A stretch of DNA of 64,000 bases from Phallusia mammillata (GCA_965637545.1 OZ281495.1:20212001-20276000); one strand, 5' to 3'. Counted from the stretch's first letter, positions 1-57,910 are shown. Made by a program: numbers and translations. Notes: generated by a model not told the origin, from the letters alone.

Positions 1-1
1 G

Positions 2-3000
2 CTTAGTGCTCAGCTTGAAAATGCTTACAGGGATGTGGATAAATTAAAACGAGATCATGATAAGGAGGTTTGCAAACTTTGCTTTGTAATTTTCTGATTT
101 AACTCCTGTTTCGGCATTTGTCTGGATTTGTATTTTTTGCAATTTAGGTAATTCAACTTAACCAGCAGTTAGTAAGCACTGTAGATGAGTATGAAACCAA
201 ACTTATGGAAGAAAAGGCTTTATGTGAAGATTTGGAAAACAGACTGGAAATGTCAGATACTGGTAGGTTTTACTTGGTGACAAATTTTTTTCTGTTCACT
301 GTATGTTAAATGTTTTGTGATTGTAATGTCCATCAACTGTTCTTATTTTGCAGTAAGTTCTGAAATACAAGCCTCATTTAGCAAACAGCTTGAGCAGTTG
401 GAAGAGGAAAGAGACACATTACGACAACAACTTCGTCAATCGCAAACTCGTGCTAAAGAAAGCAGTGTTTCCAAGAAACAAATTAAAGTAATTGCCATTG
501 TTTTGCACCTGAATTGGTATGTGTTGATGATTTTTTTTAAATTTGTGTTGAAAGGACTTGGAAGATGAAGTGGTTTCGTATCAGAAAGAACTTGCAGATG
601 CAACACAAAGAATAGAGGAGACAGAAAAAGCAAAAAGAAACCTACGAGATGATATTGAGCGAATGGAAGAATCTGCTGATAAACTGGTATTTATGTTTCA
701 ATACACTCTTTTTCCTATAATCCTTAGCAATGCGAAATATAAAAATTGAACAGCTTTTCTGTCGACACAGAAAAGTTACATATTTATATTTGTAATCCAC
801 TTGCTATGAATTTCCTAAACTTCTTGAATGTTTATAATCTCCTTTAATAAGTAGTTGACAAATGTTCATGTGCAGAAAAAAACAAAGTCTGCACTTGAAA
901 CTGAGCTTGAAGCAATGAAAGACCACCTCAATGAATCCAAGCTTGAAATGCAACAACTCAATGAAATGCATGAGAAGAAATCCAAAGAGGTACAACAGGT
1001 TCAAATGTATATTGCTAAGCAAGCTTTGTTAAATTAATTAAATGTCTCTCCCTTTTTCAAAGCATGAAGATTCACTTGCACAATTACAAGCCGATCTGGA
1101 CACAGTAACACAAACTGCAGTGCAGGACAAAGAAGACAATGAAAAGAAACTTCAAGACTGCAAGAATGAACATTCAGAAGAATTAAAAAATCTGCATTCA
1201 CAACACCACAGACAGGTAAAATTTTGTGCTGAAATCTGCTGCTGTTGTCATATTATTCTCAAATATATTACTTTACAAATTAAAACTTCTGCTCAAATTA
1301 TTGTGACATATAGGTGCAAAAAGTTTATTTTATTAGCTTTATTCAAATTTATACTTTCTAAGTTGTATGATTTTTTTAAATTTTGTTTAACTTCTCAATT
1401 AGAATAGTTTTGCAGAATGCATTTTTGTCATACAAGGTGAACCTGTATAATTAACATTCAAACAATAATAATAATAATGTATGTCATCTCCCGTTATCAT
1501 TTACATGTTGATATTACGTAGCTAATACGCTTACCTGTGCACACAAATTTGGCTAAATTATTGATGCAGCAAGCTAGTTGCATATGCATATAAAATATTC
1601 ATAGCTTTACTCTTTTTCCATTTCCCCAACTATTAGCACAAAACTCCGCTACACCATAGAGAAAGCTTCTTTCGAAAGTTTAAAGGTGCTTAAACAGTCC
1701 AGAATGGATGATTTTAGCCCTGAAAGTCAGTTGTCTTCAATGTTTGGCAGCAGTTCACAGACTTCCATGAAACAGTGTTCATCATGTGGTTGCGTTCGAG
1801 TGGTTTCTCGAATGCCCAACAGTGAGTTGAGGTTGATCAAATTTGGTCCAGCAGCCCTTGCTAAAGCTGCTGCTTTAAGTGATGACTTGAGTGACAGCGA
1901 TACAGACTCATGTTGTTGTATTTGCCATTTGGAAGATATTTCCCATTCCCCAAGTTTATCACCTTCCATGGAAGATTTAAGTTCGATACATGATGATCAG
2001 AGTTGCTCACTTGAGTGCTGTAAATGCTATAGTGTATGCAAAAATCTAATTAAGAAAGTAAGAGAAAGTGAAATGGTTTACAGCTTAAACCTGCTAAAAA
2101 AGTCCATTAGATTTGTATTCAAGTTTAAATTTATTTTTAGATGGATGAAGTGAAGGTTGAAATGCAGCGACAACTTGATGCTACAAGAGCACAAATGGAA
2201 AATGAACGAAAAGGACAATTGGAATCTGTCAAAGATGTAAGTTTCTTTTTCATTGCAGGTTTAAAAAGTGTTGACAAAAAATATCTAAACTTTCCGTAAA
2301 GCAGTGTTCTCTACAAAACTTAATATCTTTTATTGGGTAATATTTTTGGCTTTAAAAGTATGACTAAAAGTTGTTGGAATATTTTCTTCCATTCCAGTCA
2401 GTAAATTTGAACGAGGAAATATAATATTTCAACTTGATTTTCCAACCCTGAAAAAAATAGTACTTTAAATTTGTTATTCACAAAAGTTCACAATGTGTTA
2501 AATTTAGGTTCATGAAAAGTCTCGTGATCGAGAAGTTGTCCGCATGCAAGAAGAACATGATGCCAAATTGCAAGAGCTAATTGATTCTCATCAGAAAGAA
2601 TTAAAATCATTAAGAATTGAAGCTGAGGAAATTAAGACATTTGGTGAAGAACGACTCCGCATAGAACTTAAGGTAACAAAAGCTAATACAAAATTGTAAA
2701 TATTTTTGCTAAATGGCTGATGCTATTTTTTAGGAAGAATTTGAGAATCAACTTGAGAAGGAACTTGATTTACTGCGAAGAAGATTGGATCAAGAAAATG
2801 AACTTTCACAAGCAGAGCTAGTGGAAAAACATAGAGATGATTTGGACAACCTTAAACAACAACACAAATCTGATTTGGAATGTATGTCAAGCTTTTGTTT
2901 TGTTTTAAATTTGATGCCAAATACAGTGATAAAACAAGCATTTTCATCTCAAAATCATTTAGTTTATGGTAAATATGTATTTTTTGTTTTTGGGAAGATC

Positions 3001-6000
3001 TTTTTATGAGACCTGTATTTTTCAAAAACAAGTTTTGTTGTTTGTAAATCTACTACAATTGACTACAACAGTGTAACTACGTATTTATCTGACATAATTG
3101 TCCTGCACTCTTTTCTGTGATAATTACTGGCAAATTATGGGCTTCAGGTCAAATGGAAGAAGTCTTGAAACAGCAGGGACTTGCCAATGAAAACACATTG
3201 CAAGCCCAAAAAGCAGAATTGGATGAAGCTTTGGAAGTGATGAAACTAGAATTCAAAAATGCTCAGGAGACTTTGGAACGGGAACATGCAGAATCTATTG
3301 CTAAAATAGAGGTTTGTTACATCACATTTATAATTGTAACAAAACCACAGCTACCACTTTTAAGGGCAAAAAAGAAAACAATGTAAATGTCAAGTTTGTT
3401 GATTTTGTTTGCTGTTGCCTTTTAAAAAAAATTGATCATTTTTTAATTCAAACTTGTTTATATGAAAGAAATATTTGTTAAATAGTTATAATTTAAATGA
3501 TTAAATAATAAAATTAAGTGACAAAACGCAGAACTAAAAAATGGCAATTTTATAAAGTAGATTCAACATATTTTTATGTTTCAACAAAATTTTTAATTCA
3601 GGCTGATTTTGGTAACATGCAAAGCGAGAAAGACAAGGCTGTAGAAAAAGTTTCAGTGGAAGCAGAGGAAGCTTTGAAACAAGCAAATCAACAGAGAGAA
3701 GAACTCAAAACTGAGGTAAACCCCCAATAAGTGTTAAAATGTTATATTCATGTTTGGTTAATATGTCACCACATGTTATAGTGGCATGGTGATTTAAACA
3801 TAAAAGCCTAATCTGCTTTACATTAATATCTGGTTTTATTGGAATATTAATATAACATGAAGCTTACACCAAATAGGGATTATACAAAGCCTTTCAAGTG
3901 ATATTGTTTGGTTTGGCATTATTTTTTTTCTGCCGAGACATTTAACATTTGTTTTACCCTGAAGTGTTTTAATAATACTCCATGAATCATTAAGAGGAAG
4001 TCAATGCAATTTTTGAGTAAAACCCAACTGTTTTGTGTTATAGATCTCAGATTTGCAGCAAAAACTACAGTCCTTGACAGAGGAACTTGGGCAGACAAAT
4101 GAAACGGCTTTGTTGAAACAAGACTCGCTTGATCAAGAGCAAGATATTCGGCAAGACATTGAACAGGAGCTTCAATCTTTGAAAGAAGAATTATCTGCTG
4201 TGCAAAATGAAAGAGACCAGATTTTTTCACAAGCTGAAGGTATACTTGTGGTTATGTTAAGAGCAATAAAAAGATATATTAGTGTTAAGTGTCGAGGACT
4301 GAGATTCTAAACCCTTTTTATATCTTTGCCCTTCCTTTTCAAGTTTTTAAAATATAAATTTACTCCTAAATTCATTCAACACTCTAATTTCACATATAAA
4401 AGCCTTTATGTGCTTACCTTGTTTGTGCATGTAAACATCAGGTTATGTGCCGTTGCTTGTTACTAGAGGTAGTTATTTGTTACAATGGTTACTAAACCAA
4501 AGTTACTATAATTGAAAAAAAACAGTTATACAGTTATAAATGACTTTTTTAAGGCACTGTTTCCATTGAATGAAGTTAAATAAACGGGCAGCGTCCATTT
4601 ATATATATCGAAAGGTAGAGCCAAAAACAATAGAGCATTGCAAATAAGTAAGATTCCTCATGTGGCTGGGTGTCTTTTAATGTAAACTGTAACAGCCTCA
4701 ACATGTAAACTGAATAAAAAGTGGTTAAATGTTACAGAAAGCCAAAAACGCTTGGCAGCTCTTCACCTTGAAGAAACAGAAAAACTGAATGATGAAATAG
4801 CCAATCTAAACAATGATCATCGGCAGAAAATTGAAAGCATGCAAATTGAAATAGATGGCTTGAGAACATCTAGAACTGATTTACAGGTATAAAAACTCTT
4901 GTGTAAACAGTAATATTAATGAATGAACCTGTGCTAATTTGTTGTGTTTGCGTTCTTAGGATCTTAAAAGCCAACTTTTGGCCAGAGCTGCATCAGTGGA
5001 AGATTTAGAAAAAATGAGAGCTGACTTTGCTGAAGAAAAAGAATCTCTCATAAAAATGCATGATGAAGAAATGGAAAAAATCAGGTTTTTGTTCAACCAA
5101 ATATATCTATGCAAGCACACATTTTTGGAACATCTCCTGTTTTAGAGACAAAACTATTCATTTTAACTAATTTTTTTGTAGATAACTGACAGTGAATACA
5201 TTTTGTTTGTTTTAAATATGCTTTTTAATGTAGGTTGGATCATGAAGAAGAAAGCAGAAATTATCAGGAGAAACTTGAACAGCTTCTATCTGACCTGAAT
5301 GCAAGTCAAGAGAAGTTAGCTGATATCAGTTCTTCCCCAATGCTACTGGAATCATCCCCCATGAGATCAGTATCTGCGATGTCAGACTATGATTCCAGCA
5401 ATGTTCAAGCACTCAACAAAGACTACAGAAGGCAAGAACAATATGTCAATGTCTTTGAAAACAATAGTTTTGCAGTTTAAAAGGTTCCCAATTAGTAGGA
5501 ATGTTAAATTGAATCCTTTGCTGTTTCTATCGGGTAATTAACACCAATATAAATTTGTGCTCCGACTGATTGTTAAAATGTAAACGCGAGCATTGTAAAA
5601 AAACAATGATTCCGTCAAGTAAATATGGCTTTCTGATACTTGGTTACATCAGTGGTTAAAACACGCAATAGGTTTTTTGCATAAGCTTGGCACTTTTAGC
5701 ATAAACGTTAATTTAAAAAAAATCTTATCAGTATTTTTTTCTGCAGCGCAATGACTCTCACCAATGTATCAGATGTTTCTGGGTTGAGTGAAACTCCTTT
5801 GGATGAAGAGGATGAAGAAGAAGAAAGCAAAGATAAAACAGCTGATGAGAAGCATCTTGAAGAGGAAATACTAAAACAGCAACTTGAAGAAATGAAACGA
5901 GTTTTAGATGAAGTTCAACAAGAACTGGAAAAGTATGTTGATTTCTTTCTACCGTTTTTTGCTGTTTTGACTCACTTTTGTTTTGAATTAAAGATTTGTA

Positions 6001-21000: not shown

Positions 21001-24000
21001 TTAAAGCTGCAAACCATCAAAAAAGCGTTTTCAGAATTCTTGGTGCAATCGTTTTCACTGTGAAATCATATATTCTTTCCTGTCGAAAATAAATTTGTTT
21101 TGTTTGAGTTTGGGAGCCTTTGTATGTTGAGAGCAACAGCTGCCTCAGTTTTATTGATTTCAATTCGCCTATTTACGTTTTTTTGCTGAATCGCCTGAGG
21201 CTATTTAGCCGCAAACAACTCTGACAGCTGTTGCTCTCTGCTGCCGAAGGTGTCGGTTGTTTTGTGTAGAATCTGTGCGCTAGAGTTACATTTACACCAG
21301 TTTTATCGCATTGTAGAAACCGGATGTTCCTGTGGATCAGGAAGATTCTTCGTCATCTTCTGATTCTGAGGACGATGTGGATGAAATGAAAATACAGCTC
21401 GATGCCAAAGAGAAGGAAATACAAAAGCAACGGGAATGGATAAGTGAATCAGCTGAAAAGTTGGAATCTATGCAAATGTAATTTATAGCTAATGCAGTTA
21501 AATTACAAAATAACTTACTTTCTTTAATAGAACATTGTTTAACGGGACGTACTGCGTCGCAGATTAACTTTTTAGTTGTGTCTTAAAACGATCCGGTGGT
21601 TTTTAAGAAATGCTAAGGTTCAAGTCAATGAAATATCAAACTTCATTCAATGTTCCATAGTGAATATCTTTTAAAGCATTGATCATGTTGTAACAGGGAG
21701 CTTCAAGAACTAAAGCAAGAACATGAAGAACTTATTTTCCGCTGTGAAAATCTTGAAACCGAAGTGGCAGAAAAGTAAGTACATTCGTCTGTTAAGTGTG
21801 TGTAAACAAATGCATGAATGTAAACGAACATATATTCAACATCTTAGGTCGGAAGAGTTGGAAGCATTAAGACAGAAATTTGTCGATGAAGAAACTGGGG
21901 ACAACATTTCTCAAGACGATGTTTCACAAGATCCAGAAGGTGACGAACAAATTTCGTCAGAGCTTGAACCAATCAAGGAAGAGATCGACTCAGATATGGA
22001 GAACACAGAGAAACTGAGTGATGAAGTCGAGGAGTTAAATAAGAAATTAATTTCAATATGCGAGGTTTGTACATCTGCTAGTCGAATAAACTGTGGTATT
22101 TTTTTATTATATTGTGGAATTTTACAATGTAATGTGTTGTTGTTCTGAAAATGGTGATATCTAAAACCTAAAACTATCACTTCAAGAACAATAAAACTGT
22201 GTTTGATTGACTTTAATGACTGTAACAATATTTTGTGAATGATATTTTACCCTTATTAAATAGTTGAAATGGCAGATATTTTATCAATATGGAAAAGGTG
22301 TTTGTTAGTTATGCCATTGTTGAAACGTTACAACTCACATTAAATTCTGAATACTGTTACTTTTTGGTTATAGCATACTTGCTATAATACTTGGTAAGGT
22401 GCAAGTTTGGTAAACATGTTTGTATGTTGTCGTATAGGACCGGGATCGTGTTTCGAAACAGCTGAACGACGTACAACGTGAATGTACAGCTCTGCTTGAT
22501 GACAACAATCGTCTGGAGGATGAGAACAAGAAAATGGAGGAGAGGGACGCTAACCACGTTGCTAAGATACAGGAGTTGGAAGATTTGATCACAGAACGAG
22601 AAAATGAACTCCAGCAGGTTTGCAAAAAAGTTTTGTATTATCGAATATTGTAGCCACACTTCCTACTAAATATATGTGCGAGATGGTCCAGAAAAGAATA
22701 ACCCCAGAATGTGCATAACATGTTTGGCCGAGTACCAAGCATGTCTTATTACTTATTAGTAGGGATGGGCCGAGCCGAGCCAGAACCCGAGTACTCGGTA
22801 CCGAGCATCGCTGTTTTTGATGCTCGGTGCTCGGCCGAGCAGTTGCACAAACTGACCCGAGCGTTAAATTTGCATACTCATGCCCTGCTAACATATTTAA
22901 ATAGTGGTCTAAAGGGTATCTATGAACAAAAACGAATATTTTTTTAAATGCACTAGATGGTAAAAAAACGCGTACTTTATGGGCATGTACAGCTTAAAAA
23001 ACACCGCCGGTGACGTAAGAGGCCTTGCAGAGCTATAACGTAATAAGGGGATTTTTTGTGACGTCATAATGCACCGAGCCTCCGAGCACCGAGCATTAAA
23101 GTGAGATGCTCGGTGCTCGACCAAACAGAACATTTGCAGTTTTGGCACATCCCTACTTATTAGTTCATTTTCAACTCCTTTATCCTTTTTTGTTGTTAAG
23201 CACTATATTGGTCGAACCGAAATCTTTATGATTGTTTCGCGGGGTACCAAAGCAAAAAGATAGTGACATTTGGTGCATAGCGAACACGGCTGCCACGTTT
23301 TTGATGGTGGCATTCATGATTGTTTGCAAAACGATTTATATTTTAATGTAGGCACAAATGGATGCTGCAGAGTTACAGCAAAATGTGAACGATTTAGCTG
23401 AGGATCTACAGAACATGGAAAGTATTGTACAAACTGCAACTAGCAACAAAATGATCATACAGGTTTGTTAATACGTTGTAAGCATAGTTTCTTTTGTACT
23501 ATCAGACAACTAGGGACAAGGCAGTGTTAATCGTTAAATCGAACGTTCAAGAAAAACGCGACCACTTTATATTACGTAGCAAGGCTAAGAAACAAATTGT
23601 GACCTAGTATATGTCAAATAACATTTTTCCAGCTCTCTCAAGTCTGTGTTTTTACAGGAGGAACTTCACAATAAATCTATTGAATACAAACAGACTGTGG
23701 CAAACCTGCAGAACGAAGTTGAACGTTTAGCAATGCAGGAACAATATCAACATGCCAGGGATGGCAGTGGAGATGGACAGAACTTACATGCGGACAAGGT
23801 ACTAAAATCCCAGACCTATTACAACAAGTTACAACGAAGCCCGGCCCGATTGACCTATAATGATCAGTGACAAACTTTAATATGATAATGTGTTTGTATG
23901 CAGTGCATTTGGCATGTATTTAGTTAACAGTATTGGACGATGCAGGTTGCACTGGAAAACGTTGCTGAGGGCAGCATGTTTAACATTGGTAACAACCGTT

Positions 24001-27000
24001 TCTATGTAAAACGTCACTTTGAAGTAAATTCGTCAAATTCACAGAAGCAGAAATCGTTTGAACTTGAAACTGAAGTGGATCGACTTAATGTAGAGAACGA
24101 GACTTTACGAGAAGAGGTTCAAAGTTTAACTTTCAAAACTGATGAACTGCAAACAGAACTGGATGCCACTAGACAGGTAGGTTAGATGTCACTTAACATA
24201 TAAATTTCGATGCCTATAGCGCCCAGAAAATCCGATAAACTTAGATAGTAGGGATGGGCCGAGTCGAGCCATAACCCGAGTACTCGGTACCGAGCATCGC
24301 TGTTTCTGATGCTCGGTGCTCGGCCGAGCAGTTGCACGATCTGACCCTAGCATTAAATTTGCATATTTATGCCATGCTGACATATGAAACTAGTGTTCAA
24401 AAGGGTATCCAAGAACAAACCGTTGACCGTTAGATGGTGGAAAACCCGTAGTTCGTACACATATACAGCTTAATACACTGCTGGTTACATAAGGGATGTT
24501 GGAAAGCTACAAAACTAGCGTATAATAGGGAATGGTTGTGACGTCACAATACACCGAGCGTGCACTTGAGATACTCGGTGCTCGAACAAACAAAACATTT
24601 GCAGTTTTGGCCCATCCCTAAATCACCCTAGGTTAAAAAGCATAAACTATGACCGCTTTTTTGTATTTAGCAAATTTAGTCAATGGAGCCTACCTTTTTG
24701 TAAGAATATAAAATATATTTTTTCATTATTTAATGACCAAAATAACGGCCCAAATGGTTTAAAATGTTTTTTAAGTAAAAAAATAACGGTAAAACTGTTG
24801 TTGCGTCATATCTCGTTACATTTTGCGCATTAAATCGTCGAAATATACAAACAACAATTGTAGTTTTGGGTCATTCCTTACAGTAACTCCTCACAAAACT
24901 GCCGTAACACAGCAATTTAATATGTTTTAGTTCAAAACAAGTTGAAATTGTGCTGTTTGACTAATGTGATTAAAACTTGCTGATATAATCCAAACGGTAT
25001 TTCTGTTGTCATTTTTTGAGGTTGAAATTAAATTATTCTTAATCGTTTTCAGTCACATGTTGATGAAATCCAGCTTCTTCAGTCGCAACATGAATCTGAA
25101 ATGTCTCATCTCCAACTTCGCGTGGATGAAATGAGTCTTCCGTTGCAACCCCAAATTGTTGAAGAGGAACTACTGCAGAAATCCCCATCAGAACTGGTGA
25201 GAAACCTACTACCGTTTTTGTATAATTAAAAAAAAACATCCTAAAAATACTAGGAAAGGTATGAAACAATACGTACATGATAAAAAGGAATTGATGTTTC
25301 TTTCCCAATTTAACAATATAAGACAATGTCGTACTCCAAGTAGCCCAACTGATTTAAATGTTCATTGTTTAGTCTCGGAAATCGTCAAGCAGCAGTAGCA
25401 AATCACCTGTTGAGGAAATCCAGTCGGAGATTGCTGAACTAAGAGAAAAACATGAACGCAAGATGGAAGAAATTCAGGTAATGTCAAATTAAAATGATTT
25501 TAAGGCAAATATATTTCTTGATTTTAAGCATACAATTTTCTCATCACAAAAAATGTTTAACACTTTGTCATGTTTTACTATTATCGACGTTGTTATGTAA
25601 TCGCGAGTAAAATGCGTTTGGGGCTGTGTTGTTAATGTAACTGGAATAAATACCATAATCAATTTTTTTTTATTTTGATAAAAATCATTTTTTGGATTTT
25701 TTGAAGCATGTTTGTTTGACATATGCTTTATTAAAACTAACAGTTCAAAGGTTAATTTTGGTCATACGCAATGAATGAGTTTACATGATGAGCGAATATG
25801 ATCATGAACTTGCATTTTTTTATTTTTCAGAACAAATTCGCTGCCGAGTTAAAAGAAGCGGTTGAATCTGCGGTGAAAGAACAAGAAGAGAGAAGTGAAG
25901 CTCGGGTGGCTCAACTCGAGGAAAAACACAAGAAAGAAGTTAATGATATTTTGTCCGAATCCATGTCAGGTATACAACCAACACTACAAATTCTCTTGAG
26001 ACATTTCTGTTTTTGTAATTTTCCGTAGGAAAAAAATTCCATCTGTGTCGAAACAACACTCGGTGCTCCGCAAAGTACACCAGGAAATTTATGAAGGCCA
26101 CATGCGATTTATTCGATATGTCCGTTTTTTGTTAGTTTTTACATGTTTAGTACAGATAGGTATATCTGTAACAAAACAAACCTCGCCTTCACAACGTTAT
26201 TTGGAAACTAAGACTGTCATTTAGAGACTGAGGGCACTTGACCCACTTATTAAATAATGAAAAGGCTATATTGCTTTTCTTACCATTTGTCAGGCATTTT
26301 TTGTCACTTACAGTTGACAATGAACTTGCACGCCGTTTACGTGACGAACTTGATCTCGCTGACAAGCTTGACAACAATCTTCTCAACCAACTTCAGACTC
26401 TATCACCAGAAGATGATTCACAATCCCAACTCAACCTGTCTTCGCCGGAAAAGGATGCGGAGATATCAGTGAGACTTCAGGTTGGTTAATCTCCTTTGAA
26501 ATCGACCATTTTTTTGCTTGTCATGCTACAGTACTGTACGTATTTTTAGCATCTCTTGTCGCGTTTGCACAACGAGGGCGTCCAGGTTTTGTCACTGTCT
26601 GAACTTCAATTCATCAAACACCACCAAAGCTACCTTAACTCTTCTGCACAAACCACGAGGTGACTGGTTGCAACCTTACTATTGTGATACTATGCCAAAT
26701 ACTGGTATTTTGTAGTAACAGTGTAAACCTACCGTAAAATATATAATATAAGGTGTGTGAGATAAACTGACAACTTTTGTTTAGTGATGAACCTGAAGAA
26801 AAGGCGGCACCTGACCCACCACCACCTTCAGTTGACATCGAAGCACTGAAACGAGCTTGGGAAAATGAGAAGTTGGCGTTGTTGGATGCAATTCAGGCTT
26901 TGAAAGAACTTCTCACTCAAACTGCACAAGAAGTTGCGGTAATTCAAATGAGAAAAAACTGTAAATTAACAAAACAACTGTAAATCAGTTTTAGCTTTGA

Positions 27001-30000: not shown

Positions 30001-33000
30001 GATCATTTTTTTAGGTGTGATGATTTGTCAGCCGCAGTGAAATCCGAACAAGAACGTTGCCAGGAACTCCGTGGCGCCCTCGAGCGAGAAGCGATCGCGA
30101 GTCGACAGGCACGTGAAGCGCTAGAGAGCGAACGTGCAGTGACAGCTGAAGGGCGCGCACAAGATCGAGCAACTGTAACAGATCTACAAAACATTTTAGG
30201 TGAGTTGCTACATCTTGCTGTAATGTATTAGTACTGTATTATTAGCTTTCAAAGAAAAACATGGCTACAAATACTAATCGTGAGTGACGTCGTCAGTGTG
30301 TGACGTCAATGTGCTTTGAGCTTTGTCCAGCATCATTTTGGACCGGTCACCTAAAAATGCCATTGCACTTTGGTTGGTCAATAAATTTAGCAATAATGTT
30401 TATTGTGCCTTCCTGAAATGCTGCAAAGGCTAAAGAAAAAGTGGTACAGAACTTTTATACAATTGAACCACACTAATTTTAACATTTAAAAATACTACCA
30501 CAGCAAATAGTCCTAACCTGTGTTGTTATTTGCAGATGAAGCAAAACAAGAAACTGAACGGATGCAGTCACGTGTCCAAGCTGCCGAGCACGAGAAGGCG
30601 CTAGTCATACGTAACGCCGAGGAAATGAAGCGTGCAGTTAATGAGAAGCTAGAACAAGAACGTATGTCACGTGACGAGGCGGTGACGCGAGAGAGAAGAG
30701 CCCGTATTGAACTACAGTCTGCTCTTGAAGCTGAAAAGGTAATTGGTGCAACAAATTAATTTTTTTTAAAAAAAAGGTTAACGGATATACGTAATAACTG
30801 GCATAAGTCCCAATCTATGTTATTGTTTTGAAATGGGTTGATTCAATATTTTGTATTACATGTAACATTGGTATTGTCCTACCAGGCACAAAACAGGGAA
30901 GCTCACCATCGTATACGGGCGCTTGAAGAACAACAAAATCCCAACGACTCCCCATCACCTGCCGAGATGAAGGATTCGCTTCTCGCCAACCGACGTCAAC
31001 TTGAATCGTTACGTCAGAGACTGCAAATGGAGACGTCAAAGTTACAGGTATATTCTCCGCCTATTTGAACATATGATCTATAGATAATTATAGATAATTT
31101 ACAAAACGAATGTTTTTGCAGAATTTAGTTGATCGCTCTTCCCATCGACCTCCGTCACGAAGCTCACGTGACCACACGTCACCTTCGAGCTCTTTACTGT
31201 CATCTGACGGCGAAAAGTTTGAATCTTTGAAGCGCTCGTTGGGTGACATGCAGACCGAGTTGAAGGATCTTTACACAGAATTGTCAATTCCCAAAAGAGT
31301 AAGTAAATAACCGAGAAGATTGTTGAATCACAATTCGCTCATAAACTATTTATTTTTACATCAACTTCGCAAGCCAATTTTATGTGGTCGTCAGCTATGT
31401 ATCTTAACATTAAGAATAACAAAAAGTTAGAACGCTCAGGTTTTTCGACCACATTTTCCTGTTAATTTATGACTACTGTAGTGCCACTACGAGCTTCATT
31501 TTCTTCAGCGTATTTTTATAAAAAATATTGTTATCTACTGACATTTTCTCTTTATCAAAACAAATCCACATTCGTTTATCCCAATAAAATGTAATTTATT
31601 GCTTGCGTTTGACAGATAAGCTTACTCTATCCCTAACCATGTTTCAGGCTTCACAATCGAGCTCGGTTCCGATGCAATTCAACGATCAATTGCTGCGTGA
31701 GAATGCCGAGTTATCAGATTATGCAGCTCGATGTGCGAGTGAAGCGAGAGAGTTACGCGACACTATTGCCGATTTGAAGGAAGATCAGCAGAAACAAACT
31801 CCATCGGAAAAAGCTTTGTCCCTCGCTCAGGTTTGTTGCAACTTTCAAGTAAAATCCCATAAATACAACAGGTGTTTGTTCATACAATAAGCATCGCTGG
31901 TTGATTACATTACTCCCGTTGCTATAGATACTGTGTTAGTACATTTTGGTTTTCGTTTTGAATCAACATGACGGCAGAAATGTAATATCACATTTGTATA
32001 ACTATAGAGCAGTGGTTCCCAAACTTTTCTCTTTTAAGGCGCATTTTAGAAAAAACATAAATTATTTGGCGCACTTCGAACATTTGAATAAAAAATATAT
32101 TTGAATTTTTTATTTCAGTTTAAAATGCCACAGCCAATTAGCCGACAAAGGCACTAACTACGAGGCCGCTATGCAGGTCACTCTCATAGTTAAATAGCCT
32201 AGTTGAACATCTCAGAGACGTGGAGCATGTTGGCCTAGTGGTTTAAGCACCTGGTACTACTACTCTACTTGATTGATTTTAATTTCAATATTTTTTGTGG
32301 CACTCTTAATGACATCTCGGCGCATAGTTTGGGTACCACTGCAGAGTGTAAAAGCTAACCATGTCAATTTCAAAAAATAACATTTCTTTATTTCAATAAA
32401 ATACGTTTTTTATTAATTATGAGCTAAAGCTTAAACAGCAGATTTTTGTATGGTTGGTATACAAATGTTAAATCCTTTTTATAAAACTTTTTCCTTTGTG
32501 TCTCGTAATGCCACGTGACAATTTTAATCTGGTACCAAAATTTGTCTTACTGCTATAGATGTTAAAGTCAGTCTTGTAAACACTACATAAAAAACAATCA
32601 AGGAACGTGCATCGTAAATTTAAACGAAAATTTATGTGTAAAAAACAATTTCGTCTAGTCTCCGAGTCTAGAAAACCAACAAAAGATGGCGACACGGATG
32701 CACAAACTCTACACTCGATATCTTCGTGCTGAGAGCTTCCGCAAATCACTCGCATATCAGAAGAAATACTTGCTGCTATTGTTGGGCGGTTTTCAGGTGG
32801 GCATTGTACTTCTTATACAGTAGGATCTTCGGCTAATTGTTTGCGCTACCGATGAAATTCAACTCTCAAGCATTTCGTTAAAAGTTGAACTCACGAATAT
32901 TGTGTCAGGGATTATGCAAGACGCAAAATTTTTAGATATCCTGTGTAGAATTTCGACGGTCTCCGAAATTTATCATTGAAATGTACATCCGTAAAACGTA

Positions 33001-34639: not shown

Positions 34640-35200
34640 AACCAGCACCCCAGCAAAATAATTTCCACCAGGCTTCCGTATACAATTTGAAGCAGTGTTT
34701 TACTCGTAGACGTTCCGTAGTTTTCTACACACCGCTATATTGTAGCACCTTAGTGGAGGTTAGTTTATATCTGAGCCCCTCAATCCAATCCCTTTAACGA
34801 CTGCTAGTATAAGCATTTACCAATCCAGTGTATTTGACTTGAAATCTGCTTAGGGTTTAATCTAGCATTGTAACGTGTAGGTTTACGATACTGCACCGTA
34901 TGCTACCTGAACTATATATATTTATCCGTATAATGCTGCGGCAGTTGTGTAGTGCCATAGATCGTTTCTATAACCACCATAGCATGACTGTGAAGGATAT
35001 AATTAAATGCGTTTGTATTTTGCCTATGTTGCCGATCGTAGATGAACAGAGCGTTAGATTGCATTTTTCTTGCTATAGTTTATTTTTGTATATGCTGTAG
35101 CTGCTTGCTCCTTGCGTGTCTGTTTGCTAACCTACTTAATGTTCCCGTGTTTGTAAAATCTGCCTTTAATTTGCTGGGCATTATTTAAGACGCTTGCTAC

Positions 35201-35602
35201 TAGGGATGGGCCGAGCCGAGCCAGAACCCGAGTACTCGGTACCGAGCATCGCTGTTTTTAATGCTCGGTGCTCGGCCGAGCAGTTGCACAAACTGACCCG
35301 AGCGTTAAATTTGCATATTCATGCCCTACTAACATACGAAACTAGTGTTTTAAAAGGTGTCTGTGAACAAAAACGAATGATTTTTCAAATGTATTAGATA
35401 GTGGAAGAACGCGTACTTAAAGGGCATGCCAGCTTAATAAAACACCGCCGGTGACGTAAGAGACCTTGTAGAGCTAAAACGTAGAAAGGGGATTTTTTGT
35501 GACGTCATAATGCACCGAGCGTGCTCGGCCGAGCACCGAGCATTAAAGTGAGATGCTCGGTGCTCGACCAAGCAGAACATTTGCAGTTTTGGCCCATCCC
35601 TA
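35201..35602 (+). mobile_element. hAT MITE with TAGGGATG termini, copy 3, downstream of the pericentrin stop codon
   Basis: Perfect 12-bp TIRs. Exact 8-bp TSD CTTGCTAC at 35193-35200 and 35603-35610. Closely similar to copy 1. Confidence 0.93.
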
Positions 35603-36413: not shown

Positions 36414-37134
36414 TATTATGGGTCCCCTTCCCTGAAGGGGACACATATTGTTTTTGTCCGTATTTTTTTTTCTTTTTTCTGTCTAACGCTGGTTTGTAAC
36501 GCTCGTTTGGTCGAGAAAGCGTGCTTCAAATTTATTCAAATTTGGACAGATGTTAGTTATTAGTCCAAGTTTGGTCCCCGTGAAATTTGACCCCGAATGA
36601 CCCAGCGGTTCACCCACAGACCCCCAAAACGTAAAATTTTTAAACGCTCGTTTGGTCAAGAAAGCATGCTTCAAATTTATTCAAATTTGGACAGATGTTA
36701 GTTATTACTCCGAGTTTGGTCCCCGTGAAATTTGACTCCGAATGACCCAGCGGTTCACCCACAGACCCCCAAAACGTAAAAATTTTTTAAAGTTAAATGA
36801 AAAACAATTTGTTATGTATACGCTGGCAGCAAATCGCTTTTTAATTTAAAGTGTCTGTTACACAACTGTTACAGCTTTCTAGAAAAAAATTGTGTCTAAA
36901 ACCCGACCTTGGGCGACAATATCTGGGTCAAAGCAAGAGATTAAATTGAAAGTATTTGTTTCGTTCTTTTTTAATGTTTTTGTAATTATACGACAATAAT
37001 AGTGAAAAAAATACAAACAAATTTTTTTATTCTTGGATTAATGCTTTCTAAAAATTTGTTCTCAAGAATTTAAAAATCACCGCAACATTTGTTTACCGTA
37101 AATCCGCACAAACACGCGTGTGGGGACCCATTAG
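36414..37134. mobile_element. Helentron-associated (HINE / DINE-1 / pearl-like) non-autonomous element
   Basis: Subterminal inverted repeats ATGGGTCCCC (36418-36427) and GGGGACCCAT (37122-37131). A 9-bp hairpin GTCCCCTTC-cct-GAAGGGGAC lies at 36422-36442. There are two ~145-bp tandem cores and a palindrome ACACGCGTGT at 37112-37121. The flanks are TT-rich and there is no TSD. Confidence 0.7.
36498..36790. repeat. Tandem duplication, 2 x ~145 bp (core repeats of the HINE-like element)
   Basis: Units 36498-36642 and 36643-~36790 are near-identical, with a few substitutions. Confidence 0.95.
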
Positions 37135-39394: not shown

Positions 39395-48637
<9,243 letters not shown>

Positions 48638-51003: not shown

Positions 51004-53362
51004 CTATATTTCTTCTTCAAACCGTTCATCAATATTTACAGTATTGTCAATGTAACTGCTTCTTGGACGCTTCGTTGGTCGCCAAGTGTGATCAGGCGGA
51101 ATTTGAGAACGGCGACTGAATGCTTGCCAGTAATCCGCGTGATTGTTCATCCAACTTTTCCTCGGTGTGCGGCGACGTCGAGAGATATCATCTCTTCTTT
51201 GTTGCCGACTTCTCGAAGTTTCCTTGTTCCTTCGAGAAGATACGGCGTCAAGGGATATTTTTTCATTGGTGATATTGGGCTTCGATTTTCTGCATGATGG
51301 ACATTTTAGATTTTGTTTTGCAGCCCTTTTGAAGGAAGGCGAAAGAGAAGCCATAAGGCAAAATGGCAGTGTTCCGGCAAACATGTACAGAAACATAAAT
51401 ATTACAGCAAAATCAGTCGTTGTAAATGAAACTACGTGAAGAATGTCATAAGATGGAACACCCGACGCATTATACCACTGAAGGGCAGAGTAAGGCATTT
51501 CTAAATTGAGAACGCCTGTTGGGTCTCCGAAAACATCAACAGCAATTAACGAGTAGACAGGCAACATAAGAAGATACACCACCGAGTAAGTACACAAGGT
51601 AGCTTTTGCTTCCGTAATTTCTCCGAAAAACGACACAGCGCTGTCGTACGGTACAGACAAAGGAGTGGTAGCGAGGTCCTCCACTTTAACAGCGGACGCC
51701 ATAGTATCACTTCGTTTGATTGACGGATACTTAAGCCAATCAGGTGGAAGAGGCATTCGGGTATCAAGGGATTTGTTAGCGCCAGCATTTTGATGCATCT
51801 GAATGCTATCGGTTATGATGGCGCTGAGGTCAGCTTCCTGGCAGTTGGACATAACTTGCTGGGTGTGTTCTTGCTTGTGAGAATACGACACGTTTTCCTT
51901 GCAAGAGACAGTGTTTACTCGACCCTGTGAAACTCTCAAGCTCGAATTCCTAGCCAGCCTGTCGACGGTCTTCACGTCCGAGGTAGGTTTGCTTTCCTGT
52001 CGGGATTGAAAGTAAACCAGTGCCTGGGCTTGTTCGTAGCTGTTTAGTCGCATTGCGTTGTTTTTCGTCTTCAGCAAAGCTATTGAAGTGGCAACAATGC
52101 AAATCACGAGGAAAACTGCAGGCACAAACAGCATCAGTATGTATATTATAGTCATTGTTCGAATCCGGTTGGCTGGGATTGTAAAAAAGCTGGACAAAGG
52201 GTGAAACTCGTCAACCCTATTTTGGAGATGATCTCCATAAAGTAGGAAACGTTCTTGGCCGTAGATAACACTAACGACCGCCAAAACAAAGCTTGCTGCC
52301 CACGATAAAAGCAAGTACAGCAACAGAGGCAAACGGGAGAGACAACTGATTGAATATCTCAGCTCCTTCACCGAATTTCTATTCATTTTCATCTTGGTTT
52401 TAAGCTCTATTATCGGATTTGAAACCTTGCACAAATACATATGGGGCTTAATCCGAATCAATGCCATCCACCTTTCGCAAACAGCGCCAATGCTTGAATA
52501 CAAACTCAATGCCACAATGAAGTGAAACACTGCGTTCGACACATGTTTGGCCGTTGAGAGACGGTAACTGCTTGCTGGGGTTTCGTTAAACGCCATCATC
52601 TCATAAGCTGTTATCATCAACGTTGGAAGAAGGAAGCAGGCCGCCACCAGACTTGCCATCGCGAACGAGCAGAGAAACATCGTCTGGGCCTAAAACAAAA
52701 TCAAAACTTGTTTTAAACATGTTTAGGGGTTAAAAATAAACATAAACAACGAAACGTGTACCAAAATATTCACGATTAGATTAAGCGTTTTTAAATACAG
52801 TAGTTAATGTTATCTCACCATCGTCTAAGTTGTCTTACTTTCGCAATCAACGAGTGTCAAAAATTATGAGCAGTTTCACGTCTAAGATTTTATTATGTTT
52901 GGTATTTGGATTTTCTAAAGTTGCTAATATTGTTGGACACAACAGCCTCTTCAATAAACCAAAAGAGCTAGAGTTTATAACGATCATAAGCGTCGTGACC
53001 ACAAAGAACTATTTTCGGCCTTGGTTTACCCAAATGGATTTCTTGTAAGTCATCATTCGCTGTGCAGATTCCTCGTCTTCTTTGGTCAACGACCTTTCTG
53101 CTCTTTTGTGAATGGCCACAAAAATTGTCAACATGTTGAAAACGGCGCAGCAAATTAACAAAACGCCAGCAAATGCAATTACTACATTCGCAGCAAGTTG
53201 ACACGAAGGGTCAAGCGTTTCCCAAACTGTTTTATACTCCGGAGCACCAGAGGTTTCGTACGTTGCTGCCGTGGTGACGGTGGAATTCGCGCCATCTTCA
53301 AGTGATTTGAGCCACTCGTCTTTGAACTGGGTACAAAACGGGATAAGATACGGTCCTTTCAT
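51004..53362 (-). CDS. Divergent class A (rhodopsin-like) orphan 7TM receptor, 2 exons, ~672 aa
   Basis: Exon 1 (53030-53362: ATG, N-x-S/T sequon, TM1 ending FNMLTIFV) splices in phase 0 to exon 2 (51004-52689). Seven hydrophobic segments are present, with ERW at the DRY position, W in TM4, P in TM5 and TM6, and a helix-8-like SPSFKRAAK. The exon 1 donor is less certain than exon 2. Confidence 0.78.
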
Positions 53363-55086: not shown

Positions 55087-57910
55087 TTACATGCGATATT
55101 GACATGCCAACATTCTATCAGCTGCGATCGCAGCAAGGTACCGATAATCGGTAAATAAATGCTGCGCATGGTAGTGAGGCCACTGTTGGAAATGATTTGT
55201 TTGCAACTGCTGTTCACCTCGTCCAGTTGCGCCTTGAATAAAGCCAATGTTTCCTTGTAACAACCTGTGCTTCAGGTGTGCAGATACAACGTTGTTAACA
55301 GCAGGAAACTGCGAAGGCACGAAAGATTTGGTTTTTGACAAGTTTAAAATTTGATCCACGCCATGGCTTAAAGGCGTCGTGCTTTTGTTTGTTAAATCAA
55401 GAGGTTGTGTTCCTCCGCTCTTTGGCGTTGTTGGTCCATGTGGGCGTGTTAGTGACGCCCCATTTATTGCTTCCGCAGCAAGTGCCAAAGTTGTGAGATT
55501 GCATCGCATTGGTGGTGCAGGCATCGTCTGTTCTCGCTCCAACGAGGATACCACTTCCTTCGGGATAGGAGAGGCCAATTTCTTTTCTTGTTTTGTGGTC
55601 GGCTCATACGGAATCACGATGTCGTGTTTAACTAGGGCGTGCTTCCTACGGTTTGATTCACGCCTAAAACGGCGCTTGCAACCAGGGCATGGGAAAATAG
55701 CCTTTAGGCGAACGCTTGGTGATGGTATCGACCTCTCTTCCTGAGAAACAATGGCCAGTGGGCTGGGACGGTTTGCAGCTTGCAGATTTTCACGTGCTGG
55801 AACAGCATGAGGAATGTCATTGAATGCAGGAACAGGCGAAACTGACAACTTTCTTCGTTTGCCTTCAGGGTTGGCCATTGTATCACTACACGAAGCTGAA
55901 AAATACGATATTGCTAGTTAATCATCTGTTAAGTTTAACACCCACAAAGTAAACCAAAGCTATTGCTACAATAAACATAAATGAAAGTACGTAACTGCTA
56001 TCTAACACCTTACGTGTCTGGAAAAACTACGTAACACATCAAAACCTACTTTTCACGTTCAAATTTCATTCAAAACCTAGTCTAGCTTGCCGTTACTAAT
56101 TATGCTTTTCTAAATCAGCAAAACGAAGCGAATAAAACGGATTTAAGCTTTTGTACGAAATATTCTTTTAGGCGTTCATGTGCTGTTTTTATACACTCAC
56201 GTTGAGTAACGAACGAAGCCGAAACTATTTTAATATACTTATATCTACATCGCAATTCCACACACTGCTTGAACAGAACTGTGCCCATTCAAAGTTTTGC
56301 TTTTTGGTTTTATACTGCGCGCAACAGCTGGAAGCAACAAAAAAAAGCGTTCCTGGCTCATTCCAGACAAAACAAAGCACTCGTTATCAACGCGCGAACG
56401 CGGGCGATACGTCCCCGCAAATTCCTTTGTTCGAGTCGGGCGGCGCTGAATGGTGCAGCTTCTGTGCAGCGGAAGGTGCGAAGGGCAAACACAATTGAGC
56501 ACACGTCGCCAGGCTACGGGCTATAATCCCTGCCACATAGCTCGGTAACAATAACTTTTCGCAATTTCACATGAAAGCCGAAAGACTTCCCTCGTCTGTT
56601 AAGCTCGCTGGCAGATTTTCGTTTATGTTTGTCTTAGCTTTGGCTGGCAGATTTGAATAGGATGGTCTTGTGTGTATATATTCACATATTTTTGCATGGT
56701 TCGGATATATACTTCGTGGAAAAAATATTTTTCAGATACTACCGCGCAATAACATTCGCACTATGATCGAGGACATAGATAAGTATTGTCACTATATGTT
56801 GGTTTCAATAAAAAAGGCATTAAAGTATATTAGGTATAGATGGTCATCCTACCCCTTCAATAATATTTTGATGTGCGTTTCTAAATAAAAGTTTAACGCA
56901 TACTACATAAGTATTTTTTAAAACCTTACAAAACAGTCAAATTCCTCCGTATGTTGCATTGTTAGAAAAATGTCGGGTTTTCACTTCAAACATTTAATAA
57001 CAAGATTGTACACCAGCAACTGAAAGAATTTAAATAGCAAAATCGATTTACTGAGGAAAAATGATCACCTTTAGGTTTATGCCATCTTTTGTGTGATGCG
57101 AGATTAGCAGGACAACCGAAGTTCTTTCCGCATTCCGAGCATTCGTAACGGACATTCACAATTCGTGGGCATCGATGCTGTGCTAGTTCTAAAGCATTGC
57201 TGTGTATTTTGGCGCAAAGTCGACACATAAAATGTTCCGAGCCTGTACATAAAAAAGCGCCAGTTAAATACGTTATATAACACGCACTGCGAACATAGAC
57301 TTATTACCTTCCTTTGATGTTTCAGTCACTTCTTCGACTTTGTGGTTTAAAGTCTGAGTTTTTGTTACATTTCCGCTTTTGAAGTTTTCATGCGGCGAAG
57401 CAATTTCACCCGCCGGCAAAATTTTTATACCTGAAGAAACAAATCAACGGTGTTATCTATAACTGCCATTTATTCTCACAAAAAGCAGTTGGGAGTTGGT
57501 TGTATCGGTTAAAACGACCGAAGAAACGAACCTAAGACGGGTGACGAGTTTTCGTCCTCAAGTTGTCGATTCGCGTATCTACGTTTTTTCGCAAAATTCT
57601 TGCCACTGGTGACAGGCTTATCTTCATCCACTCTTGGTAAGTTGGCACCATTTCGCTGCTTAACACCTAAGCAGGTTGACTGACTTCCATCATCACAAGT
57701 TAAGTTCTGATCCACCAGGTGGGTTCTATCCTTGCTCTTATATTGAGTTGAGATCTTTAAATCTTTGGCTAAAGTGAATTCATCGTTGTTTACCGAAAAG
57801 TTGTTGGGCCACTCTTCTGTGTTCTCAACAAGACCTTCTGCAGCAGCGCATCGTGGACTGTTGCTTCTGTATCCAGAATCAGGTGAACCAGCTTCTACGA
57901 GCTCAACCAT
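55087..57910 (-). CDS. INSM: INSM (insulinoma-associated / IA-1 / nerfin / EGL-46 family) zinc-finger transcription factor, 4 exons, ~494 aa
   Basis: Exons 57532-57910, 57308-57430, 57069-57242 and 55087-55895 join in phase. The protein contains [13 protein letters not shown] (compare INSM1 EDEVTTSPVLGLKI), the diagnostic ZF1-ZF2 pair [43 protein letters not shown], and a third finger [17 protein letters not shown]. Confidence 0.92.

Follow-up and report, generated by a model that had tools for sequence, protein, structure and literature searches.

A conserved cysteine-rich exon, probably an alternative first exon, within an intron of a PACT-domain scaffold gene of Phallusia mammillata

The DNA analysed here, called the window throughout, is a stretch of 64,000 nucleotides (nt) from Phallusia mammillata (GCA_965637545.1 OZ281495.1:20212001-20276000) that contains no N. 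Its plus strand carries a gene which, judged by its domain content, encodes a PACT-domain (pericentrin/AKAP450-type) scaffold protein, and one intron of this gene houses an extra, cysteine-rich exon that is the subject of this report. We regard it as probable that this exon, at about 1620-2057, is a conserved alternative first exon of the scaffold gene. The parts of the gene on which the argument depends are the following.

1063 to 1215, plus strand: coiled-coil exon upstream of the extra exon; constitutive, with a phase-0 end (CAG/GTAAAA), and covered by contigs of runs X1, X2 and X10.
1216 to 2140, plus strand: constitutive intron of 925 nt (GT..AG), which houses the extra exon; the 1215>2141 joint is present in X1 and X10.
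2141 to 2236, plus strand: shared downstream exon, phase 0, beginning MDEVKVEMQ..., established by RNA joints.
32659 to 32820, plus strand: exon encoding the start of the PACT domain (YLRAESFRKSLAYQKKYLLLLLGGFQ), found by Pfam PF10495 and by motif search.

Ten GT..AG joints are found in positions 1-4000 among the contigs of the sequencing runs X1, X2 and X10, and we therefore treat these three runs as RNA. The exon chain that they confirm (148-262, 354-487, 555-686, 876-989 and 1063-1215, then 2141-2236, 2508-2672, 2734-2881, 3148-3311 and 3602-3715) forms a single open frame, and the reading frame of these ten spliced exons is rich in E, K, Q and L. The splice from 1215 to 2141, by which 925 nt are skipped, is constitutive; the introns neighbouring this one span 61-290 nt. 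Farther downstream, the match to PF10495 at 32659-32820 has an expect value (E) of 5.6e-10 and scores 39.9 bits against a cut-off of 25. Because this match exceeds the curated cut-off, the label of a pericentrin/AKAP450-type scaffold, which a preliminary description made from the sequence of the window had already attached to the gene, appears to be right. A second PACT-like motif, RLKFLVRKW, was found by motif search at 33344.

Within the 925-nt intron, the elements of the extra exon are arranged as follows.

1589 to 1595, plus strand: TATAAAA, a candidate TATA box, the sole TATAWAW of the intron, 31 nt before the A of the initiator-like element.
1618 to 1624, plus strand: CCATTTC, a perfect YYANWYY initiator-like heptamer, with the predicted start at A1620.
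1620 to 1703, plus strand: predicted ATG-free 5' leader, which includes an acceptor-like pyrimidine tract and the AG at 1635-1636.
1704 to 2057, plus strand: coding part of the probable alternative first exon, 118 amino acids (aa), Ser/Asp-rich, recognised by its open frame, RNA contigs and homologs.
2058 to 2140, plus strand: predicted intron of 83 nt, with donor AAA/GTAAGA and acceptor TTTATTTTTAG; its phase-0 GT is conserved.

The preliminary description had read this intron as an internal promoter followed by a Cys-rich alternative first exon, and the sequence elements it named are all in place: TATAAAA at 1589, CCATTTC with its A 31 nt later, a leader devoid of ATG, the ATG at 1704 (context agaATGG), and a phase-0 GTAAGA donor at 2058 in frame with the next exon. 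The coding part measures 354 nt, or 118 codons, so that the donor at 2058 stands in phase 0, and the exon at 2141-2236 is likewise entered in phase 0 after an acceptor (TTTTAG) that ends at 2140. Translation through 2058-2140 would add a tail that is not conserved and end at the stop of 2151-2153, and reading in phase 0 from 1637, directly after the AG at 1635-1636, meets a TAA at 1691, again as had been described. The composition of the encoded peptide was also correctly given as Ser/Asp-rich, with 12 Cys in three clusters (we count 26 Ser and 11 Asp).

A chance origin of the open frame is excluded. It extends over 183 codons (1605-2153), for which the probability is about 1e-6 per frame at a stop frequency of about 0.07; open frames that long number 4 among 7142 in the whole 64-kb window, and none arose in 5000 shuffles of the intron. 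The G+C content is 41% in the coding part as against 27% in the remaining intron. We also considered a transposon origin of the exon and rejected it, as there are no terminal or inverted repeats around it.

Relatives of the peptide were sought by an exhaustive phmmer search with the peptide itself, followed by a profile search. The former returned five short proteins of 109-196 aa that are 44-50% identical over the whole peptide (E 4e-16 to 4e-6), and the latter, in which E values go down to 1e-47, added three more. All of these relatives are open reading frames (ORFs) called on genomic contigs, whose source is marine or other metagenomes; they are designated below by L numbers where they have to be told apart. 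With L003, L004, L005 and L012 counted as one species, the exon is present in eight other species, or nine including that of the window. Other leads were set aside: the long phmmer matches P0004 and P0007 are repetitive unrelated proteins, a word-based protein search with the single peptide gave no match, and a scan of Joint Genome Institute (JGI) metagenomes for a spliced homolog in a metatranscript returned merely another genomic contig of the L003 species.

The place of the exon in the gene is conserved. In each of the four species for which flanking sequence is available (L003, L007, L008 and L009), it lies in the orthologous intron, between the orthologues of 1063-1215 and 2141-2236, and beyond it the order of exons follows that of the window for as much as about 10 kb, homologous colinear exons reaching about 10.7 kb in L003 and L009. 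Homologs of the upstream exon were located at 7305-7481 in L003, 8394-8558 in L008 and 9169-9282 in L009. The next exon is in phase 0 in every species with flanks; it opens with ATG GAY GAR in the window, L003 and L007 and at a called ATG in L008 and L009, while the distance that separates it from the Cys-rich exon is 83 nt in the window, 160 in L003, 49 in L007, 579 in L008 and 751 in L009.

The boundaries of conservation are sharp at both ends. The initial Met is invariant and homology begins exactly there in tblastn alignments; all nine species have an in-frame stop 15-186 nt ahead of the ATG, and in three of them (L001, L002 and L010) no AG intervenes between this stop and the ATG. At the other end, a phase-0 GT directly follows the same K/R codon in nine of nine species, in the form GTRAG in eight. 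The donor hexamers are GTAAGA and GTAAGC (two species each), GTAAGG, GTGAGC, GTAAGT, GTGAGG and GTTCTA, and beyond them the reading frames continue into unrelated tails of 2-31 residues before a stop. Between close pairs of species, nucleotide identity of 70-75% in the exon drops to 20-36% over the preceding 150 nt and to 29-45% over the following 100 nt. The ratio of non-synonymous to synonymous substitution rates (dN/dS) is 0.06-0.07 among L006, L008 and L009, non-synonymous change being about 1/15 of synonymous change, and the pair L002/L010 gives 0.076 for non-synonymous (pN) and 0.80 for synonymous (pS) differences. The preliminary description had named Cys conservation in relatives and dN/dS as informative about its proposal; nine Cys prove invariant, and the ratio is as just given.

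Taken as comparative evidence, this pattern is the signature of a translated exon, with a start codon at its front and a splice donor at its end. Conservation over the nine species extends to the start codon, to the position of the donor and, wherever flanking sequence is available, to the location within the gene, and the alignments show an exon that is protein-coding and under strong purifying selection. The homologous ORFs would read through any intron, since they are prokaryote-style calls on genomic metagenome contigs, and the short 'proteins' in the libraries are read-through calls of this exon.

RNA contigs show that a minority of samples transcribe the extra exon. Two contigs of run X2 lie on it (1624-1792 and 1767-1926, at a depth of about 4 versus about 5 for the main transcript), as does one contig of run X1 (1746-2039, at a depth of 4.4 versus 20); the two runs come from different studies, and X10 has no contig on the exon. 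Intronic coverage in 1-4000 is limited to these X1 and X2 pieces within 1624-2039, which fully explain the depth bins, and in the contigs of X1, X2 and X10 there is no coverage of 1216-1623 or 2040-2140. Such a pattern is not expected from DNA contamination or intron retention, since among the introns of 4 kb only 1624-2039 is covered. Ten further RNA-type runs contain the flanking exons and no words from the extra exon. Their word share of 0.16 equals that of the flanking exons alone, (123+66)/1191 words, and from this we conclude that expression is sample-restricted. Together with the conservation in eight other species, the contigs within 1624-2039 support the core of the preliminary description, namely an alternative first coding exon with a Cys-rich head.

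One further run, X16, a large one labelled as another organism (organism B), contains low-depth pieces of 151 nt at 1215-1507, 2095-2245, 2373-2523 and 3712-3862, which match the window with 0-1 mismatch, intron included, so that X16 probably includes DNA of the window's own species and not of a relative. Its high-depth short matches, at 1371-1401 and 3462-3517, are to simple or repeat sequence. As evidence of conservation, X16 is uninformative, as it offers merely identical 151-nt pieces and repeat matches.

If the exon is an alternative first exon, transcription would start within the 925-nt intron, probably near 1620 and downstream of the TATA-like box, with ATG 1704 as the start codon of the transcript. 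Splicing would then connect the phase-0 donor at 2058 to the constitutive acceptor at 2140; we infer both this 2057>2141 junction and the exact start. The predicted product is N-terminally truncated, with the 118-aa Cys-rich head in place of all upstream coiled-coil exons, and would retain the C-terminal PACT targeting domain. The head may supply the scaffold with a second localisation or partner, through metal or lipid. If the exon density of about 35% in the first 4 kb is extended over 2141-34000, the result agrees with the predicted length of about 3,690 aa for this isoform.

Several points weigh against this interpretation. The 2057>2141 junction is in no contig, the coverage of X1 ending at 2039, 18 nt before the donor, and the contigs give neither strand, true ends nor expression level. 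Of the proposed TATA/initiator-driven start near 1620, one part stands, since an X2 contig begins at 1624 and this left edge fits such a start, whereas the promoter motifs themselves fare less well: the TATA box is unconserved, being found only in the window (-115 from the ATG) and in L002 (-85), and the motif pair is at chance level, with an initiator-like heptamer at the correct distance from 8 of the 65 TATAWAW sites of the window (about 12%). The 84-nt stretch free of ATG (P about 0.2) is likewise no more than chance would give. Acceptor-like pyrimidine tracts with an AG precede the ATG in the window (1636), L001, L003 and L008, and because such sites occur in several species a spliced 5' end, made by an upstream non-coding exon or by spliced-leader (SL) trans-splicing, is possible. 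Codon-usage log-odds are 0.14 for the extra exon versus 0.6-1.1 for the coiled-coil exons and -0.5 for introns, and one minus-strand frame scores 0.23, in a measure that was trained on the window's own exons, is dominated by coiled-coil composition and discriminates weakly. Word-based, phmmer and profile searches found no annotated protein that carries the domain, and AlphaFold models are of low confidence, with a mean predicted local distance difference test score (pLDDT) of 51 with the window peptide first and 50 with the shortest homolog first.

With these reservations in mind, three other accounts have to be weighed. The exon could be a separate small gene nested in the intron, encoding a Cys-rich protein of about 110-150 aa on an unspliced, PACT-independent transcript that ends near the 83-nt interval. 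That every library homolog is a short ORF call (109-196 aa), and that no contig has a junction to the exon at 2141, would suit such a gene, but the calls are of the prokaryote style already mentioned, and even where the exons are 80-88% identical the tails beyond the K/R codon show no conservation, opening with GTRAG in eight of nine species. Neither AATAAA nor ATTAAA occurs in 2058-2140 to end such a transcript, 2040-2140 is without RNA coverage, and in all four species with flanks the exon keeps its place just upstream of the same phase-0 exon; we therefore think a nested gene very improbable.

The remaining accounts concern the 5' end, and we give each of them only a slender chance, slightly below that of a nested gene. 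An internal cassette exon spliced from 1215 would be either included in frame (from 1605, after a TAG, adding 151 aa) or act as a poison exon (from 1637, after the AG, with the stop at 1691). Both flanking introns are in phase 0, a strong pyrimidine tract precedes the AG at 1636, and the window has an in-frame acceptor-like AG at 1603-1604, as L003 has at -75 and -60 and L008 at -27. However, in L001, L002 and L010 an in-frame stop precedes the ATG by 15-27 nt and no AG lies between the two, which makes in-frame inclusion impossible in these species, while homology starts exactly at the invariant Met, and a poison exon would not maintain a dN/dS of 0.06. The contigs contain no joint from 1215 to the exon, and X2 is colinear with the genome from 1624 across 1636. 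This same X2 contig (1624-1792, record 15) bears on the last account, in which the exon does come first in the coding sequence, with a 5' end formed at the AG of 1635-1636 by SL trans-splicing or by an upstream non-coding exon. The acceptor-like ctctttttccatttccccaactattag at 1636, followed by CAC, comparable sites in L001, L003 and L008 at 20-85 nt ahead of the ATG, and the lack of conservation of the TATA box speak for it; against it, the contig has 13 genomic bases 5' of the AG, with no loose end and no leader sequence, and the intron at 1216-1623 is without RNA coverage. The preliminary description had raised a trans-splice acceptor at this AG as an option, which is not favoured given that colinearity, in a negative that rests on contigs, which rarer trans-spliced molecules could escape. 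The exon may sometimes be included in full-length transcripts, or have a spliced 5' untranslated region (UTR).

With regard to the upstream sequence in general, acceptor-like sites lie at 1603-1604 and 1635-1636 in the window, 10070-10087 in L003, 396-400 in L001 and about 9970-9973 in L008; they are in frame with the exon in the window (1605), L003 and L008, and out of frame in the window (1637) and L001. The species of L007, from a Tara metagenome, has several peculiarities. The orthologues of 2141-2236 and 2508-2672 are fused at 873-1135 by intron loss, the intron after the Cys-rich exon is 49 nt long with the unusual donor GTTCTA, and only 82 nt separate the donor of the upstream exon from the ATG, so that any internal promoter there would have to overlap the upstream exon or intron.

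Returning to an alternative first exon as the favoured reading, the next question is what its head might do. The 12 Cys lie at positions 25, 28, 30, 70, 71, 72, 74, 100, 105, 106, 108 and 112, and form the motifs CxxCxC (25-30), CxCxCH (70-75) and CCxC(xxxC) (105-112). Nine Cys and one His are invariant in the nine species (C25, C28, C30, C70, C72, C74, H75, C105, C106 and C108), while C112 is absent from one species. The first motif sits in a conserved hydrophobic segment, VRVVSRM..SELRLIKFG, which AlphaFold predicts as beta strands with a pLDDT of about 70, the remainder falling below 50. Pfam, searched up to an E of 5, assigned none of the nine members to a family, the peptide had no usable match in the ESM Atlas, and a profile search of the PDB gave no significant match, touching only the RING-CH (MARCH-type) zinc finger 2d8s (E 1.7). 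The likeness to 2d8s is limited to the CxICH...CCxC stretch and is not significant; the head differs from RING-CH in ligand spacing and lacks its conserved Trp and His.

Our preferred suggestion for the head is a small zinc or metal-thiolate module built from the nine Cys and the His, which we rank first because the Cys spacing is fixed and the His invariant. The second choice is an S-acylated membrane anchor, formed through the CCCxC and CCxC runs. S-acylated Cys clusters are known from SNAP-25, cysteine-string protein and the lipid anchors of AKAP79/AKAP18, and we take the CCCxC and CCxC runs of the head, in a hydrophilic N-terminal region, to resemble such palmitoylated clusters. In contrast to these, the head has a His beside its second cluster, a CxxCxC within a hydrophobic, beta-like segment, and strict spacing; the invariant His, hydrophobic setting and strict spacing are more typical of metal ligands than of S-acylation. 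The two suggestions are mutually compatible and not exclusive.

The PACT-domain gene family makes N-terminally different products, and the sites of microtubule nucleation are determined by scaffolds of the pericentrin family. The closest parallel is Pcnt S, an N-terminally truncated isoform of mammalian Pcnt B/kendrin that retains the C-terminal PACT domain, differs in its 5' UTR, is restricted to heart, skeletal muscle and testis, and resides at the nuclear envelope instead of the centrosome (PMC8397033). In mammals Pcnt S is a mark of the change from organising centres at the centrosome to those at the nuclear envelope, the cause of its different localisation being unknown, and the long form includes the entire protein sequence of Pcnt S (PMC8397033). 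The product predicted here resembles it as a shorter, sample- or tissue-restricted isoform of a PACT scaffold that has lost its N-terminal part, and differs from it in its conserved 118-aa Cys-rich head, which has no counterpart in the long form. Among invertebrates, D-PLP is the single PACT-domain protein of its species (PMC2172389). A search of the literature for a Cys-rich or lipidated N-terminus in pericentrin/PLP-type proteins found nothing relevant.

A broader proposal, which we put forward tentatively and with somewhat less than even confidence, is that this Cys9-His module (CxxCxC...CxCxCH...CCxC) represents a previously undescribed domain of at least six deeply diverged marine animal lineages, always tied to the PACT scaffold gene, and that, as an anchor formed by a metal cluster or a lipid, it diverts a truncated pericentrin to a site other than the centrosome; the isoform would then be an invertebrate counterpart of Pcnt S with a targeting head of its own. 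A truncated isoform with its own constrained head would offer a concrete handle on the isoform-specific targeting of a PACT scaffold, and would add an uncharacterised Cys-rich domain family, of which protein libraries have merely anonymous metagenome ORFs. Furthermore, ORF-style calling on eukaryotic metagenome DNA catches such exons and mislabels them as small proteins. These points are relevant to the biology of the centrosome and of the microtubule-organising centre (MTOC) as well as to domain discovery.

The window also holds features apart from the exon. In and after the PACT gene there are three direct copies, with 62-87% identity, of an interspersed repeat about 300 nt long (22752-23051, 24241-24540 and 35193-35492); this repeat yields spurious ORFs on both strands, ARAGORN found no tRNA-like part in it, and it is probably an element similar to a short interspersed nuclear element (SINE) or a miniature inverted-repeat transposable element (MITE). 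On the minus strand, an uninterrupted ORF of 558 aa at 51004-52680, with no Pfam match at E 0.01, has a basic C-terminal tail and several hydrophobic segments of membrane-like character, and a 263-aa ORF at 55087-55878 has one weak C2H2 zinc-finger match (E 4e-4, below the cut-off). An exon with an AGC/Akt-like kinase motif, called by eye, lies at 41481-41906 on the same strand. Downstream of the PACT gene, at 36493-36782, a unit of 145 nt is present in two tandem copies that are 94% identical.

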